The notes: generated from the letters alone by a model not told the origin. Numbered from the stretch's first letter, positions 22,411 to 50,342 are shown. The stretch is DNA of 64,000 nt from Glycera tridactyla (GCA_965644265.1 OZ286459.1:106144001-106208000); one strand, 5' to 3'. Translations and numbers: made by a program.

Positions 22411-24900
22411 CTACTGAAAACTACACCGAGTCATGGCATAGAGAACTGCAACTAATCTGATCCCATGATATTCATTTTCCATCCAATGAAAACTACAGCG
22501 CATCATGGCATGTAGAACTGCAACTAATATGATCCCATGATTTTCATCTCCCATCCAATGAAAACTACAGCGCATCATGGCATGTAGAACTGCGACCAAT
22601 CTGATCCCATGATTTTCATCTCCCATACAATGAAAACTACAGCACATCATGGCATGTAGTATTGCAACAAATCTGATCCCATGATTTTCATCTCCCATCC
22701 AATGAAAACTGCAGCGCATTGTGGCATGTAGAATTGAAACTAATCTGATCCCATGATTTTCATCTCCCATCCCATGAAAGTTGCAGCGCATTGTGGCATG
22801 TAGAATTGCAACAAATCTGATCCCATGATTTTCATCTCCCATCCAATGAAAGCTGCAGCGCATTGTGGCATGTAGAATTGCAACAAATCTGATCTCATGA
22901 TTTTCCTCTCCCATCCGATGAAAACTACAGCGCATCATGGCATGTAGTATGGCAACCAATCTGATCCCATGATTTTCATCTCCCATCCAATGAAAAGCTA
23001 CAGCGCATCATGGCATGTAGAATTGCAACAAATCTGATCCCATGATTTTCATCTCCCAACCAATAAAAACTACAGCGCATCATGGCATGTAGAATTGCAA
23101 CCAATCTGATCCCATGATTTTCATCTCCCATCCAATGAAAAGCTAGAGCGCATCATGGCATGTAGAATTGCAACAAATCTGATCCCATGATTTTCATCTC
23201 CCATCCAATGAAAACTACAGTGCATCATGGCATGTAGAATTGCAACTAATCTGATCCCATGATTTTCATCTCCAATCCAATGAAAGCTGCAGCGCATTGT
23301 GGCATGTAGAATTGCAACCAATCTGATCCAATGATTTTAATCTCTCATCCAATGACAACTACAGTGCATAATGGCATGTAGAATTGCAACAAATCTGATC
23401 CCATGATTTTCATCTCTCATCCAATAAAAGCTGCAGCGCATTGTGACATGAAGAATTGCAACAAATCTGATCCCATGATTTTTATCTCCCATCCAATGAA
23501 AGCTGCAGCGCATTGTGGCATGTAGAATTGCAACAAATCTGATCCCATGATTTTCATCTCCCATCCAATGAAAGCTGCAGCGCATTGTGGCATGTAGGAT
23601 TGCAACTAATATGATCCCATGATTTTCATCTCCCATCCAATGAAAACTACAGCGCCTCATGGCATGTAGAATTGCAACCGATTTGATCCCATGACTTTCA
23701 TCTCCCATCCAATGAGGAGCTAAAGCGCATAATGGCATGTAGAATTGCAACCAATCTGATCCCATGATTTTCATCTCCCATCCAATGAAAGCTGCAGCGC
23801 ATTGTGGCATGTAGAATTGCAACTAATCTGATCCCATGATTTTCATCTCCCATTCAATGAAAGCTGCAGCGCATTGTGGCATGTAGAATTGAAACTAATC
23901 TGATCCCATGATTTTCATCTACCATCCAATGAAAGCTGCAGCGCATTATGGCATGCAGAATTGCAACAAATCAGATCCCATGATTTTCATCTCCCATCCA
24001 ATGATAACTACAGTGCATAATGGCATGTAGAATTGCAACTAATCTGATCCCATGATTTTCATCTCCATCCGCTGAAAACTACAGTGCATCATGGCATGTA
24101 GAATTGCAACCAATCTGATCCCATGATTTTCATCTCCCATCCGATGACAACTACAGTGCATCATGGCATGTAGAATTGCAACAAATCTGATCCAATGATT
24201 TTCATCTCCCATCCAATGAAAGCTGCAGCGCATTGTGGCATGTAGAATTGCAACAAATCTGATCCCATGATTTTCATCTCCCATCCAATGAAAGCTGAAG
24301 CGCATTGTGGCGTGAAGAATTGCAACTCATCTGATCCCATGATTTTCATCTCCCATCCAATGAAAACTACAGCGCATCATGGCATGTAGAATTGCAACCA
24401 ATCTGATCCCATGATTTTCATCTCCCATCCGCTGAAAGCTGCAGCCCATTGTGGCATGTAGAATCGCGACCAATCTGATCCAATAATTTTCATCTTCCAT
24501 CCAATGACAACTACAGTGCATCATGGCATGTAGAATTGCAACAAATCTGATCCCATGATTTTCATCTACCATCCGCTGAAAGCTGCAGCGCATTGTGACA
24601 TGTAGAATTGCAACCAATTTGATCCCATGATTTTCATCTCCCATCAAATGAAAACTACAGCACATCATGGCATGTAGAATTACAACCAATCTGATCCCAT
24701 GATTTTCATCTCCCACCCGCTGAAAGCCGCAGCGCATCATGGCATGTAGAATTGCAACCATCTGATCCCATGATTTTCATCTCCCATCCGCTGAAGCTGT
24801 TGCGCATTGTGGCATGTAGAATTGCAACCAATCTGATCCCATGATTTTCATCTCCCATCAGCTGAAAGCTGCAGCGCATCATGGTATGTAGAATTACAAC
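22411..24900. repeat. 72-bp satellite/minisatellite array, ~34-35 copies
   Basis: Unit AATCTGATCCCATGATTTTCATCTCCCATCCAATGAAAGCTGCAGCGCATTGTGGCATGTAGAATTGCAACA; 24-aa periodicity in the minus-strand ORFs. Confidence 0.97.
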
Positions 24901-42795: not shown

Positions 42796-43806
42796 TAAGT
42801 TGGTTGGTTGTTTGTTTTACGTCACGTGTGCATCAATGGGCTGTGTTTGGATTATCATGGACTTATCACAGAAGGCGATCATTTCTGAAATTCGACGACA
42901 CCCCAGGTGCCATCTCCGGAATTTATCGAGGCTACGGGTCGTGATTTATTGGTGAATGCCTGAAAAATTCAGTCACCATGACATTCTCATTTTGTGCTGA
43001 TAACCATGCTCGAGGGGGGGGGGGGGGCGGGAGGGGGTGCCCTGTCCGATAAACCAATAAAGACTCACGATCAGAATAATTGTTTGCTCGTTTGTTCGGT
43101 TTACATCCCTTGAGCACTAATTGGGCTATATTGAGACTCCCATACAATGGGCACGGCTAGGATATTTTAGGAGTCCTGGTTTCGAGATGCCAGCGACGGA
43201 AGTGATGACATTCACAGACACTCAAGGTGTCATTACTGATTTATGAATTTCACGAAGACGCACTAAACCTTTTGTATTGGGTATTTCACTCCTTCCACCG
43301 CTGTGGAGTATGGAACTCTCATAGAACATGCATGTCTCCTGGGTTAAATATCATTGAGACATCAGCATTGGACCTTTATTATTGATTCCATTCCCGTCCT
43401 CCAATCGGAGAGAAATGTCATCACATAGAATTAGAAATATCTAGATTATAATGACACACAGGGGCTGGAGAATCAATGTACTTCAGGATATATCTACATG
43501 GGCCTATCTATGACAATGCATCTACATGTCCTGTAGTTCATCCTGGAAAGGTTCTGTGATCTTATGCCCCATTAGTGATAGGCATGAATGACGCATCACC
43601 ATGATCATACCCATTCGAGAAGTATTGCGGTGAGTCTGAACTGATAGCCACTCACACTTTCTGCTTCTCCGTCTTCTTGTGTTCAGAGATTATGTGACTG
43701 ATTCCAGCAGGGGTCAGGGAAGGCTGCTCTTATGAACCAGGCAGATACGACATATATAATCTCTCTGACTGATACATGCCCTCGAGCTCAAACATCCGAA
43801 CAACAT

Positions 43807-43832
43807 GGGGAAAGTGAAAAATACGGTCCCCT
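43807..43832 (+). repeat. Left terminal inverted repeat of Merlin element
   Basis: GGGGAAAGTGAAAAATACGGTCCCCT, exact reverse complement of 48418-48443. Confidence 0.95.
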
Positions 43833-44223
43833 GTTTTCGGAGGTTGACAGCACCTATAAAAACGATCCCAAAAATCATTTCTTGGTGTCATTTATTTGTA
43901 ATAATTAATTCCGTCCTTATAGGGCACAGCAAAGTGTAGCATCTTTCAATATTAACGATAGAAATACTGATTTAGAAGCCGTATCTTGGGGAAAAAATCC
44001 CCCGGTTTGGTAGTCTATAAAATGAGAGATGTCAAAGTGTAGCAACAATTGCATCTACGAATTTCAAACGAAATCAGCGTTGACAAGATCATATAAGAAC
44101 ATCATGAGAGAGTGAAGATTGAAAGTAACATGGAAAACCGCAAGAAAGATCTTGAAAACCTGTCATCTCACCTCATTTCATGTAAACTGTCACGGGATCG
44201 CAACTCGCATCTCTCATTGTTGT

Positions 44224-44674
44224 GGCCGCCATTGCTTACCTGTTCACTTCCGGTTCTGAATCCGTGCGCTTGCGCGGACCTCAAAGAGTTCCCTAAGAAA
44301 TCATCGAATAACTCATTAAAAATGTGATAAATACCTTCCTCGATGATTTTTCTGATCTAATTAGCCAATATGGAGAAAAGTTTGGGGTATACAGACTATT
44401 TTGAAGCGTTCGTTGCAAAAACAATGTTGAAATAGCTAACCAAATCACCACCTCGCTAAAAACGTGATCTCGCGCGAGAAGTCCGAATGATATAGTTCTC
44501 ATTTCGTTTTCGATTTACGATATAAATATACGTTACCAGTTGCACCCTTGCGAGCAATTAATGTTATATAAACGTTTTGAAACGATTTATACAAAAATAA
44601 TGAGTTAGAAACGTCTCTGAAATGATTTTAGCGGTGATGCTATGAATCGATGCTATAACGGCCAGTCACGTGAC
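44224..44674. promoter_or_regulatory. Putative internal (possibly bidirectional) promoter of the Merlin element
   Basis: GGCCGCCATT (YY1-like, 44224-44233), ACTTCCGG (ETS, 44246-44253), TGCGCTTGCGC (NRF1-like, ~44265-44275), CCAAT (~44366), TCTCGCGCGAGA palindrome (~44469-44480), GTCACGTGAC E-box (44665-44674). Motif matches only. Confidence 0.35.
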
Positions 44675-45638
44675 CGCCGAGGTTGCTAAGGGCGCGAAAA
44701 TTCAAAAATACTTACACACGGTCGAGGATCGAGGTAGAAGTGGGCATGCGAGAAATGGCCTATTAAGAGAGGGACAGGTATGTGATGTTTGTAATGTGTG
44801 GATGCGCAAGCAGAAGTATGAGCAAAGGCAAGCAGATGGGTATACCTGGAAGTGCCCAGAGTGCAGAGGCAGAAAATCCATACGTACTGGCAGCTTCTTC
44901 GAGAAGCAAAATCTTGATTTACAGACACTTCTCATGGTACTGTATTCATTCTCTCTACAAGTTCAAATTGTGGATGCTGTGAAAACGATTGGGAGTCACA
45001 TGTGTGAGAAGTCCATCATGGACTGGTACAATCTGTTTCGTGACTGTATGTCTCGATGGATGCTGGATCACCCACTCCAACTCGGTGGACCTGGCGAAAT
45101 CGTTGAAATTGACGAGTCCCTTTGGCGTGGTAAGCGTAAATACAACAGGGGTAGAGCGATTGCTGATTCTCCATGGGTGTTTGGCATGCTCTTCCGAACT
45201 ACGAAGAAGGTGGTTCTTGCCATAGTTCCTAACCGCACAAGGGAGGAGCTCGTCAGCCACATCGTTCGGCACATTGTTCTGAGGACGACAATATACTCCG
45301 ACCAGTTGGCAGCCTATGCTCGCTTGGGCCAACAAGAAAACCAGTACGTTCACCAAACTGTCAACCACTCGGACAACTACGTTGATCCTGAAGATGGTAC
45401 GCAAACGCAGTCCATTGAGGGTTGTTGGGGAAACTTGAAGTGCATTTTCAAGTCGATGCATGGTGTGAGAACAGAGAGGCTCCCAGCATACTTGGATGAA
45501 GTCACGTTCAGGTGGAACGCGAAAGGCGAGGACATTTTCGCCAAGCTGGTCAACATAATGGCCCTTCACTACCCTTGTGGCAATGAGCAGGTGGATGTGG
45601 CAATGCGTCAGGCAATGCCGCAGGTCCGTTTCCATTAG
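44670..45638 (+). CDS. Merlin/ISXO2-like DDE transposase (IS1595 family), N-terminus uncertain
   Basis: Zn-ribbon C38-x2-C41...DGYTWKC62-x2-C65...SIRTGSFF; LGGPGEIVEID148ES; GKRKYNRGR; WVFGM; IYSD211; TVNHS; TQSIE250GCW; YLDEVTFR. These are hallmark motifs of ISXO2/IS1595-type transposases. The ORF is called from GTG; the first in-frame ATG is only at codon 45. Confidence 0.92.
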   Translation: MTAEVAKGAKIQKYLHTVEDRGRSGHARNGLLREGQVCDVCNVWMRKQKYEQRQADGYTWKCPECRGRKSIRTGSFFEKQNLDLQTLLMVLYSFSLQVQIVDAVKTIGSHMCEKSIMDWYNLFRDCMSRWMLDHPLQLGGPGEIVEIDESLWRGKRKYNRGRAIADSPWVFGMLFRTTKKVVLAIVPNRTREELVSHIVRHIVLRTTIYSDQLAAYARLGQQENQYVHQTVNHSDNYVDPEDGTQTQSIEGCWGNLKCIFKSMHGVRTERLPAYLDEVTFRWNAKGEDIFAKLVNIMALHYPCGNEQVDVAMRQAMPQVRFH

Positions 45639-46622
45639 GATGCTCGTGCAATAGATACATTTATTTTTATACAGTAACCCAATGAAGGAAGCTGAAAGTA
45701 AAGATTACTGAAGGACAACAAACTGAAAAAAGAGATGTTTCCATTGAATAGGTAAGTAATGTCAATGATTTTATTCAAGTTGAATTTATCTTGGTTGAGA
45801 TGTACACAACAAAAATATAAGTAAACCCAATGCCTAAGCACATTGCATTTACGAAGCCCTAGATCACCATCCCTCCCCTATTCACCCCCCCCCCCCTATC
45901 CACAATCTCACAGGGGAAGATAAAGTGTTAAGTGAACCCGGCCATTTATGACATTGCAGAAATGGAGAAATTTCCCATTCAATTATTAGACTCCACCCAT
46001 TCTGATTTATTGCTCCCCATAAAACCCGGTCGTGATTGACTTTNNNNNNNNNNNNNNNNNNNNNNNNNNNNNNNNNNNNNNNNNNNNNNNNNNNNNNNNN
46101 NNNNNNNNNNNNNNNNNNNNNNNNNNNNNNNNNNNNNNNNNNNNNNNNNNNNNNNNNNNNNNNNNNNNNNNNNNNNNNNNNNNNNNNNNNNNNNNNNNNN
46201 NNNNNNNNNNNNNNNNNNNNNNNNNNNNNNNNNNNNNNNNNNNNNNNNNNNNNNNNNNNNNNNNNNNNNNNNNNNNNNNNNNNNNNNNNNNNNNNNNNNN
46301 NNNNNNNNNNNNNNNNNNNNNNNNNNNNNNNNNNNNNNNNNNNNNNNNNNNNNNNNNNNNNNNNNNNNNNNNNNNNNNNNNNNNNNNNNNNNNNNNNNNN
46401 NNNNNNNNNNNNNNNNNNNNNNNNNNNNNNNNNNNNNNNNNNNNNNNNNNNNNNNNNNNNNNNNNNNNNNNNNNNNNNNNNNNNNNNNNNNNNNNNNNNN
46501 NNNNNNNNNNNNNNNNNNNNNNNNNNNNNNNNNNNNNNNNNNNNNNNNNNNNNNNNNNNNNNNNNNNNNNNNNNNNNNNNNNNNNNNNNNNNNNNNNNNN
46601 NNNNNNNNNNNNNNNNNNNNNN

Positions 46623-47979
46623 CGCTGAACTTGCAGCTGTCTGATATCACAATAACATCATTTTCTTCATCATCAGCAACCACATCATCAGTTGTGGATA
46701 TTTCATAACCATCAGTGAATTCAAGTGCCAGTTCGAATGCCTTTGAATGATCAAACTCGCTCTCAGGTCAATTTCACTGTCACTTAGTAATTTCTTTAGG
46801 AATGATGATACATTGCAGTTATGAGGGGGATAGGTGAAAGTTTGATGATGGAAGCGATAGATATTGTGGAAAGGATGAATGACGAGAACATTAATGACAT
46901 TTTTGCAAATGGGTTTCTGATTTACGCGCTGCTGAAACTTTGGCTCGTAGAGATAGTACATCTGCGACACGTCACCCTCCCCAACAACTTGCTCCCAGTT
47001 TCCTTTGGTTTAAAGGTAATTCCTCACTTTATGTGGAGCCTGTACGGCCAGGAATTTGTAAGCCTCTGCAGACGCAATCGGATTACCACACATCTGGCAG
47101 GAACCACTGTAATTCATCCCTGGTTGTTTCGCATCAACAAACCTATGTTCTTCAGAATTGCATAGGTTCAGAGTCATGTTGGCAAAACCCTGGCGACATG
47201 AGTTTTCACCACAACAAGAATCCATTGCCGAGTGCAGAACAGGTGGTTGGAACAGTTGCTGGTCAGTGCGATCCGGGTAGGCAACAGGAAAGGATGGATT
47301 GAAGTGTGTGCGCACAATCGGGGCAGAGAAGATGGTAGAAAGTAGTCTCGACATCTTCCTGGAAGGAAAGAGAAACTGATCACCAAATGCTATTTGTCAA
47401 GTCAATACTTATGGCTGTAATAAAGATAAAAATGTTAGAACATTGTTAGTTTTTTCAGGGTACTATAAATATTAATATATAATATGAAAGACTGAAAGTG
47501 AAAAGAAATTCCATTGTCAATGAACCATGTCTTACTTGAATGTACCATAAAAAACTGCACTGAACCTGCTGAATGAAAGCAGACCAACACTAACCTCCAT
47601 TAAACATCATCTGTCACATTTCCATTCAAATTCTTCAGCCTATTTGCCTCCCTGTACCAATATTTGTAATTATATATCAATAGATTTGACAGTAACTCAC
47701 CTGAAACTTTGTAGATCTTCTGTTTATCAGGACCCTTTTGGCAGTACTCCTGGTCTTTCACTTTCAGAAAAGTGGCAGCATTCATTTCCCCACCTTCTTA
47801 CATGGAGAGCACAGGTTTGACACACTCACCTGGTACATTGCTGATTCTCACTGTTAATCTGATAGCAGTGGGACTGCATGGATGGGGGGATTCAATCATG
47901 GAACAAGAAGCTGACATGTAATGAGATATGAAGTAGTACCTGCTGTGGGACTGCACTGGTGGAGCGATTTTCGCCTCAT
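46623..47979 (-). pseudogene. Second, convergent, apparently multi-exon gene inside the Merlin element; unknown product, disrupted
   Basis: ORFs 47010-47354 and 46647-46970 are in the same frame, separated by one TAA, giving ~200 codons of near-open frame. Acceptor CTCTTTCCTTCCAG at 47359. Donors CAG/GTGAGT at 47829 and 47700, and AA/GTAAGA at 47535. A -1 shift near 46770 gives an acidic tail PESEFDHSKAFELALEFTDGYEISTTDDVVADDEENDVIVISDS running into the gap. Confidence 0.55.
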
Positions 47980-48417
47980 CACAGGCAACTGTCGTATTAA
48001 TACGCTCACAACAAAAATGGCAGCTACCAGGAAGCAGGTGCTTGTGACACATTTATTAGCGATTTTTAGTCACTAAAACGACCAGACAAGTTAAATCAGG
48101 TATTTGATCAGCGAAATTAGTTTATTTTATTGTTGGATATTGATTGTTTTGGAGGTTTAGTTCGTTTTTGTTGGAAATCAGAGTAGAAACAAATGATGCT
48201 ACACTCTTGTCATGACAGGCTATCCCCAGGGGATTTTTCCCCCTTTGATACGGCTTTTAAACCAGTTGGAAAGACAGAAAATATTAATTTTGTTGAAAGA
48301 TGCTACACTTCGTCGCCACCTAATAGGAATTTTATTGATAGAAACATATTGCTGATATATTCATCAATAAAAAGTAACTATGGGACCGTTTTCTTACATT
48401 CGACAGGTGCTCGAAAT

Positions 48418-48443
48418 AGGGGACCGTATTTTTCACTTTCCCC
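48418..48443 (-). repeat. Right terminal inverted repeat of Merlin element
   Basis: AGGGGACCGTATTTTTCACTTTCCCC. Confidence 0.95.
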
Positions 48444-50342
48444 AACAACCTAGTATGTATGTGCTTCAGAACCCGCCGAAATGATATTCTGGGTGTGTAT
48501 TCATTTAGGTGTGCGTAAGTTGGTTTGGAGTATTTGGAACGTTCCATGGTGGCCATCATCGTCTCCACCATAACTAGGTAAAGCACCACAAGGGCGGCTA
48601 TTGGTTTTTACATTCACTTCTACGCCCCAACCCCTCACCAAGTTTCCATGTAGTCAGAAATATTCTCACCGGTCAGTTTTGAATAAACCTGCCAAAACAA
48701 ATATGTTGATTGAGTAAGGTCTAAATTAACATATTCGATTTGACAGCTTTTGCAGACTTATATGATTGACAGTTGATGAATTCGTCTACATCAAGATTCA
48801 AGACGATTCACCATTAACCCTAATCACATGATTATATACCACATGGAATCTTGGTGAGGAAGTGTGGTGGTTTGGATAGATTGCGAATTGTCTGCAATGC
48901 AACGCAGAGTTGCTATTCCGATATGTATATCATTATTTATTGAGACATATGTTCCAAGGCACACTTTTCAGAATACAAGCAAAAATTTGATTTGAATCGT
49001 TCATCGTAGGAAAATGTCAGTGTTGTGGTTTTGTTCCCATCGAGATATCTCATTAATTAACATGTTTCTCAAGAGTAAGACAGACGTGGATTGATTCAGC
49101 TCATTTTCATATCATGATATTAATGAACACTTATCTGCAGCTTTCCATGATCATTGTTACGAAACATATATTTGGCCGATTGAAGATATACTTTCAATCT
49201 GTTCATTTGAAGTGATATGTTGATACGATTCACACCACTGATGTGCTCAATGTCTTTGTATCGATCAACAAACTGTCTCGAGTAGAATACCATCTAAGAT
49301 TAGTTAGTTGTAGGTCAAACCTCAGTTGTGATATGCGATTAGCTAATATGCACAGCAGGAAGGGTGTAGCAGCTGGTGTCTCCATGAGCAAAACCAGCAT
49401 TCCGTAATTTCTTCATTATTTGAGAATGCTGTTACAGGGGGTCTCTATCAGCTGCATGGAGTCAGGAGCGCCATCTCACATCTTGATGCTTCACCTGCCA
49501 CGTTCAAGCTAGAAAATATCCACGAATGCTCATGACGAACATTACAAAATGTGAAGCTGCCAGAAAGCAAAGGTCAACTCTCGTTCGTCAGCTCAAATGC
49601 ATTGGCGTAGCGTCATCCAGTAAGCTCGCAGTTCACGTGATGCCATGATGAACCGGTGATGACTGTTTTGTTGGTTCTGACTTAACATCACGTAAGCACG
49701 ATAGGTGTTATATTGCGATACCAATGCAAAAATCAGCGGTAGGATTATCCGATACTCCTTCATCTCGGTCTCCTAAGAGAGGTGACAATTAGGTTACAGA
49801 GTTACCCTCGGAAATCAAAATCATTGAACGTGGAAATAATATAGATGGAGGCTCCCCATGGGCCTTGAACAGTGGAATTCACTCTGGGTACACTGTGGGT
49901 ATTTGAGCATCATAGGTTAAATCAGAGACCATGGATAGTGTGATGCGCCACTCACTCTTTGATCATATGTAATCACCGTGGCAGCCGGGTACACTACAGC
50001 ACCCCACCACCCCTTCACTATATATAGAAGTCAATATCTATATCAATATATCTGATGTTTTTTCAGCCACCTCTGAGTGCTTCACTTAAATCTAATTGCC
50101 CCTTCAACAGTATCATATATGTAAGATATCTTGCTGAAAATATAAAGAATTTTATTTGGTGGGGGGATGGGGAGTCGTATAGACTATATCCACAATAAAG
50201 TGAACATGGGACCAGAGGAATATCTTATCACATGGATATGCCATTTTCAGTGAAGAATCGGGTGTTGAGTATTGCGTGTGATACTTCACAGCTGGATGAG
50301 AACTGCTTTTTGATGATTTCCCCTCCTAATCCATGTGATAAA

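Follow-up and report, generated by a model that had tools for sequence, protein, structure and literature searches.

Merlin transposons are regarded as a superfamily with a single gene and an ancestry among the IS1595-like insertion sequences of bacteria, and to our knowledge the Merlin elements described so far carry the transposase as their only gene. Helper genes have been acquired by Harbinger, CACTA, Mutator and KolobokP elements. For Merlin, no accessory gene is described in the literature that we searched; a 2021 survey encountered extra open reading frames (ORFs) only as overlapping ORFs, one of them probably present by chance and the others possibly Merlin-derived (PMC8101967). KolobokP elements, which occur in marine invertebrates, have a His-Cys box nuclease gene that follows the transposase and converges with it (PMC9587614). 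Here we describe an element at positions 43807-48443 of a 64,000-nt stretch of the Glycera tridactyla assembly (GCA_965644265.1, OZ286459.1:106144001-106208000), the whole of which is called the window. The element is a single insertion of a Merlin (IS1595-like) cut-and-paste transposon, and a second gene faces the transposase between its terminal inverted repeats (TIRs). We put the probability that this second gene belongs to the elements of a Merlin lineage at roughly 0.72. A first-pass annotation, made from the same DNA without database searches, had read the locus as a Merlin transposon with a convergent, intron-containing gene of unknown family.

Results

The ends of the element were located by an exact repeat search. 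A 26-nt TIR that begins GGGG (opening sequence GGGGAAAGTG) lies at 43807-43832 on the + strand, and its inverted exact copy lies at 48418-48443 on the - strand (26 of 26 positions, 0 mismatches). These two occurrences are the sole inverted pair in the 64-kb window, where 0 are expected by chance. The flanking 8-mers, read directly, form the target-site duplication (TSD): AACAACAT at 43799-43806 and AACAACCT at 48444-48451 agree at seven of eight positions, for which a hand calculation gives a chance of approximately 4e-4. Intact TIRs and an 8-bp TSD, both listed in the first-pass annotation, were thus recovered, the latter with its 7/8 match. Further inward, the motif AAGTGTAGCA occurs twice per end at mirrored distances of about 126-130 and 229-235 nt from the element ends, namely at 43932-43941 and 44035-44044 in the left subterminal region (43932-44044, + strand) and at 48197-48206 and 48301-48310 in the right one (48197-48310, - strand). 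A short G/C-flanked palindrome accompanies the motifs at both ends; on the left it is GGGGAAAAAATCCCC, placed between the two motif copies. An assembly gap of 579 N, an estimated length, interrupts the element at 46044-46622. Because the TIRs match, the subterminal motifs are mirrored and the TSD is present, the two sides of this gap are the two ends of one insertion, and the minus-strand gene therefore lies inside the element whatever the gap contains.

The transposase frame spans 44670-45638 on the + strand with 322 open codons and matched PF12762 (DDE_Tnp_IS1595) with an E value of 2.4e-24 (86.5 bits; cut-off 27). Its catalytic triad D148, D211 and E250 is retained, and all three residues are invariant columns. 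The element so unites a PF12762 domain and an intact DDE triad with TIRs and a TSD in the 8-9-bp range of the Merlin superfamily. The nearest relatives of the transposase in a 5.8-billion-protein collection are 47% identical. No in-frame ATG precedes its zinc finger, the first one (Met 45) falling within the CxxC finger, and the start codon either lies in an upstream exon or has been lost. The N-terminal 30 residues (window 44670-44800 region) are unlike those of all relatives.

The second gene lies on the - strand and is convergent with the + strand transposase. Its conserved domain covers 46716-47354, approximately 213 codons counted from a Met at 47354, and carries a premature TAA at codon 115 (47010-47012) where the homologues read through. 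The pieces flanking the TAA were searched separately and not as a joined read-through. Six proteins matched the piece 47013-47354 with E values of 1.6e-8 to 4.8e-4 (HMMER, 1.84 billion representatives); marine metagenome assemblies are the source of all six, none of which has a name or an annotation. In the reverse search, the six homologues covered 47354-46716 in one frame through the TAA with E values of 1e-25 to 1e-30, which relate to the small database of fetched loci, while a profile of four full-length members gave 8.9e-22 for 47354-47013 and 1.9e-20 for 47009-46740. On these comparisons the minus-strand region is a genuine member of a gene family, far beyond chance. The Cys-rich minus-strand reading frame that had been picked out from the sequence is therefore present and has six library homologues.

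The family domain comprises approximately 215 residues, and 37 columns are invariant when the four full members are aligned. It is marked by the motifs CC-x4-C, FC-x2-C-x2-P, RRN-x2-N-x-L-x2-HPY-x-N-x2-R-x2-H and a terminal HC-x-C, and further by RRN-x2-N-(I/V)-L and a His in the RFHH strand; in most members a low-complexity tail of variable length follows. About eight Cys/His positions are kept in all members, including the most divergent one, and because they survive in every member we infer that the protein may hold two zinc sites. The window copy fits the definition of this Merlin-associated Cys/His-rich family despite its lost RRN Arg, its lost terminal Cys and its stop codon. In Pfam, no family matched the window domain pieces or the four full-length homologues at E values up to 1; PDB sequence searches with the window pieces and the family profile (at E values up to 10 for the profile) gave no match; and scans of JGI metagenome contigs, of IMG/VR and of 185,579 bacterial and archaeal genomes (GTDB) detected no relative. 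The sole JGI match (L007) was rejected as a bacterial mur operon in which a chance RRNxxNILVIHP string stands in a non-coding frame. A derivation of the accessory protein from the transposase's own N-terminal zinc finger was likewise rejected (hhalign probability 0.2%). The family is new to the databases that we reached (Pfam, PDB and fold searches), in agreement with the unknown family proposed from the sequence.

A second genome likewise yielded Merlin elements with a homologue of the second gene between their TIRs. The transposase most similar to that of the window, P0001, is encoded on L001, a 317-kb contig from an ENA assembly. This assembly derives from a different genome, because the protein collection includes its ORFs and still gave the window transposase no match above 47% identity. 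The L001 element (313-9752) has TIRs beginning GG and an exact 8-bp TSD, GTTTTATT, and an element on another contig (L010, 6603-13941) is 98-99% identical to it and has the exact 8-bp TSD CCGAAAAG. At 7281-7814, L010 has a homologue of the second gene with 177 codons and no interruption, which lies close to the left TIR and points into the element (profile E value 3e-20; blastp 7e-16 to P0123), and in L001 the gene is interrupted by a reverse-transcriptase insertion. The L001 and L010 copies share the gene and differ in TSD, so that the gene travelled with this Merlin when it transposed. Between the window and the L001/L010 families the transposases are 47% identical and the second proteins approximately 30% identical; in both the window and L010, the second gene starts no more than approximately 0.7-1.1 kb from a TIR and points inward. 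Since a homologue thus lies inside the TIRs of a Merlin from an independent genome, in two copies with different TSDs, we favour a two-gene lineage over a one-off capture, the two origins between which the first-pass annotation had left the choice. The window element itself is a variant and not a typical Merlin member, because a homologue-supported second gene lies inside its TIRs together with the transposase.

Five of the six homologues begin at a Met aligned with Met 47354, and the sixth has an N-terminal extension. In the window, a polypyrimidine tract and AG acceptor occupy 47360-47378 on the - strand, 4 nt 5' of the ATG, similar to L003-L006. An acceptor 2-7 nt ahead of the ATG was found in five of the five genes examined (window, L003, L004, L005 and L006; 4, 6, 7, 2 and 7 nt), and in L004 an in-frame TGA lies between acceptor and ATG. 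The intron phase is not conserved, because the distance between acceptor and ATG varies. We conclude that the acceptor at 47359, one of the splice signals named by the first-pass annotation, is real and conserved, that it closes a predicted intron in the 5' untranslated region (5'UTR) and that the predicted coding sequence is a single exon. The donor-like sites GTGAGT and GTAAGA are likewise present at 47829, 47700 and 47535 (- strand), as candidate donors of the 5'UTR intron or introns that are matches to the consensus only. The small phase-1 coding exons proposed upstream are unsupported and would be 5'UTR at most: five of the six homologues start at the equivalent of Met 47354, the spacing varies, and no protein-level similarity was detected between the region upstream in the window and the upstream regions of the homologues. 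The description as an intron-containing gene accordingly stands for the 5'UTR and falls for an intron between coding exons.

The window copy of the second gene has decayed. Besides the TAA at 47010-47012, which was confirmed, Cys replaces the first Arg of the RRN motif, Ser and Trp replace two terminal Cys, and a 9-bp deletion leaves a 3-residue gap after FPV relative to the family. The acidic tail (46623-46715, - strand) is in another frame than the domain, so that a frameshift near 46716-46700, between domain and tail, is likely; of the frameshift decay suggested earlier, the difference in frame was observed and the frameshift itself is probable. We regard the second gene of the window as a pseudogene. 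As this gene is dead and the transposase frame is open, the window copy could be mobile only with gene products from other copies. The tail, including its DVIVISD end, is present as described before and runs into the gap at 46044-46622, which conceals the 3' end of the gene, also as described. It has two hydrophobic cores, each flanked by acidic residues (DDVVADD and DVIVISDS). The closest homologue, L003, has a similar pair of acid-flanked cores at its C-terminus, the last being VITV followed by SDSDDE, beyond one in-frame TGA; this likeness speaks for the acidic tail being the genuine C-terminus of the protein in the window's lineage. The resemblance to a SUMO-interacting motif (a V/I-x-V/I-V/I core beside acidic or Ser residues), proposed from the window tail, recurs at the end of the L003 gene and is absent in P0123, P0124 and P0125, and it is evidence of pattern only.

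Less decayed copies of the gene exist. One public run (X1), of a type not established, yielded two short contigs that cover the coding domain only and are 96-97% identical to the window. One change in these contigs restores the family Arg of the RRN motif, and 9 extra in-frame bases exactly fill the 3-residue gap of the window. The comparison of dN and dS between copies that had been suggested as a check gave 5 synonymous and 5 non-synonymous changes over approximately 78 and 300 sites, respectively, or a dN/dS of approximately 0.26 (binomial p value of approximately 0.04, by hand), a weak result from 10 substitutions. The match of the X1 contigs to the window ends at 46764, just ahead of the terminal Cys motif, and a rearrangement is possible in either.

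Several observations weigh against an element-borne gene. Gene order differs, as the second gene is downstream of the transposase and convergent with it in the window, and upstream on the same strand in L010. L009, a third related Merlin, offers 1.45 kb of downstream sequence, and no homologue was found in it. The four intact homologues of metagenomic origin come from 1-2-kb contigs that hold no Merlin sequence; in three of the four, an unrelated ORF, conserved among them and missing from the window, precedes the gene. No RNA runs holding the stretch were found, and the family of the window element is known from one readable copy and the two short X1 contigs.

Two of these points, the differing position and orientation relative to the transposase and the contigs of intact homologues without nearby Merlin sequence, would also fit the capture (transduplication) of a host gene, or of part of one, by Merlin elements, with no role for it in transposition, as would the decay of the second gene in the window while the transposase frame is open. 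We consider such a capture unlikely, because Merlin elements of two genomes, with transposases only 47% identical, have members of this one rare family between their TIRs, and because what is carried is not a fragment but a whole gene with 5'UTR intron and start codon. Nor was an annotated host protein found among the 1.84 billion representatives, in a search whose sensitivity was limited by the decayed 114-residue piece used as query.

An alternative explanation, which we hold to be slightly less probable again, is that the gene came from another mobile element or cassette that was inserted into a Merlin or recombined with it, for example the unit seen in L004-L006. There, the three homologues are preceded by the conserved ORF, with its stop near a donor-like site in L005 and L004, and no Merlin sequence accompanies them on their contigs. 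Neither the window nor L001 or L010 has this upstream ORF, however; the gene of L001 and L010 moved together with Merlin, given the different TSDs around a 98-99% identical internal gene; and neither in the window nor in L010 is the gene bracketed by a second set of repeats or a TSD of its own, as a nested element would be.

The fold of the second protein was approached by structure prediction. The AlphaFold model of the whole domain, from a 10-row alignment, reached a pLDDT of 42 and was too poor to use. The model of the C-terminal half (pLDDT 74) consists of three long antiparallel strands and a long helix, with a beta-hairpin followed by the helix; Foldseek and a wide structural search with this model returned generic sheet-plus-helix matches only (best Z 6.8, Foldseek E values of at least 0.2). 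That the protein is a His-Cys box or His-Me finger nuclease is very improbable. In favour stand the shared layout with KolobokP, whose second gene encodes two zinc sites built from eight conserved His/Cys (PMC9587614), and, in the present family, a comparable number of conserved Cys/His (about eight) and the hairpin-helix arrangement of the C-terminal half. Against it, the family profile had no PDB match at E values up to 10 and so none to I-PpoI or I-HmuI, no His-Me finger appeared in Foldseek or the wide structural search (in which only the C-terminal half was confidently modelled), the uninterrupted gene of L010 no longer has the HPY His, and the helix has no conserved Asn or His.

Other features of the window and of the related loci were also recorded. 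The window contains nine N gaps of 149-579 letters each, and a 234-residue ORF running across an N stretch was discarded as an artefact of the gap. The transposase frame is by far the longest ORF in the window that is not created by a gap; a second ORF, at 22411-22986 (191 aa), is also gap-free. No second copy of the element was found in the 64-kb window, and there is no tRNA gene within the element.

In the L001 element, the inserted sequence at 994-3420 (- strand) is a non-LTR-type RVT_1 gene with a weak PHD match, which removes the N-terminal part of the second gene and is absent in L010. An ORF of approximately 179 residues lies directly 5' of the transposase in two related Merlin lineages (L001:4968-5507, L010:8968-9507, L002:113-649 and L009:3-437; tblastn 6.6e-18 between the lineages). 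It has no Pfam match and no counterpart in the window; that clade may have it as a third gene or as an N-terminal exon. The L001/L010 family also has a tandem duplication of approximately 280 nt between the second gene and the 179-residue ORF and, 3' of the transposase, a dense array of approximately 74-nt direct and inverted repeats (L001:7999-8797 and L010:12187-12977). In L009, an ORF at 2054-2521, 0.6 kb 3' of the transposase, has a faint GDSL/SGNH-lipase match and possibly belongs to a neighbouring retroelement. The contig of P0137 (ENA ERZ26168041) encodes a transposase 41% identical to that of the window, with a convergent 281-residue gene 1.7 kb downstream that resembles the second gene of the window in layout and size and has no Pfam match.

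Of the conserved ORF, the metagenomic contigs contain the C-terminus, which ends immediately ahead of the homologue's 5'UTR intron (L004:740-1021, L005:2-202 and L006:1-276). Its tblastx E values are approximately 3e-34 between L004 and L006 and approximately 2e-25 to 6e-25 for the pairs with L005, at 53-58% identity, and Pfam and PDB gave no match. Its stop codon lies at the donor-like site in L005 and 3 nt before it in L004. After predicted splicing, 2 nt (L005) or 10 nt (L004) would separate this stop from the next ATG, a layout that looks like a bicistronic or re-initiation arrangement.

Discussion

If the second gene is element-borne, the one-gene picture of Merlin would change for at least one lineage: once in eukaryotes, that lineage would have gained a helper, in parallel with Harbinger, CACTA, Mutator and KolobokP, and Merlin would have its first known accessory gene. 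A family without a Pfam, PDB or fold match would then join the short list of transposon cofactors.

How such a protein might act can be outlined from the arrangement of the element. The second gene begins close to one TIR and runs inward, with a predicted 5'UTR intron followed by one coding exon. Its product comprises the domain of approximately 215 residues with two putative zinc sites and, in the window's lineage, an acidic tail with tandem SUMO-interaction-like motifs. This protein could bind the element DNA, for example at the symmetric subterminal motifs, or chromatin, and work as a transposition cofactor with the DDE transposase, as the Myb-like protein does in PIF/Harbinger. By analogy with such systems, a zinc-binding, DNA- or chromatin-binding cofactor is the function that we favour, though it is less likely than not. 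As a wider and tentative proposal, a clade of Merlin elements in marine animals may depend on an element-encoded second protein with a previously unseen two-zinc fold. This protein would attach to the subterminal repeats or to host chromatin, with SUMO-interaction motifs mediating the contact in some lineages, and transposition would require it or be regulated by it. Direct support for the cofactor mechanism came neither from Pfam or the PDB nor from the models, of which that of the whole domain was poor and that of the C-terminal half matched no known fold. For the regulatory or anti-silencing role suggested in the first-pass annotation, we found no evidence. The uninterrupted gene of L010 and the broken gene of the window form a natural test pair for the role of the protein.

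The window element shares with canonical Merlin the DDE_Tnp_IS1595 transposase, TIRs starting GG and an 8-bp TSD. It differs from it in that canonical Merlin has a transposase only, whereas here a second gene with its own predicted intron and with homologues elsewhere lies between the TIRs. Bacterial IS1595-family elements have a related transposase and can hold extra genes, but their passengers are prokaryotic cargo, while the window gene has a predicted spliceosomal intron and no prokaryotic relative. PIF/Harbinger is similarly a two-gene cut-and-paste element whose second protein is not a transposase; it belongs to a different superfamily with a different TSD, and Pfam found no Myb/SANT domain in the second protein of the window; the analogy that we draw is one of function, with a putative DNA-binding cofactor at subterminal sites. 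I-PpoI-type nucleases have no detectable similarity in sequence or fold to the window family. The closest published parallel to the window element is KolobokP, in which a DDD/E transposase is likewise followed by a Cys/His-rich gene on the complementary strand; its transposase is of another superfamily, and it has long terminal direct repeats, which are absent here.

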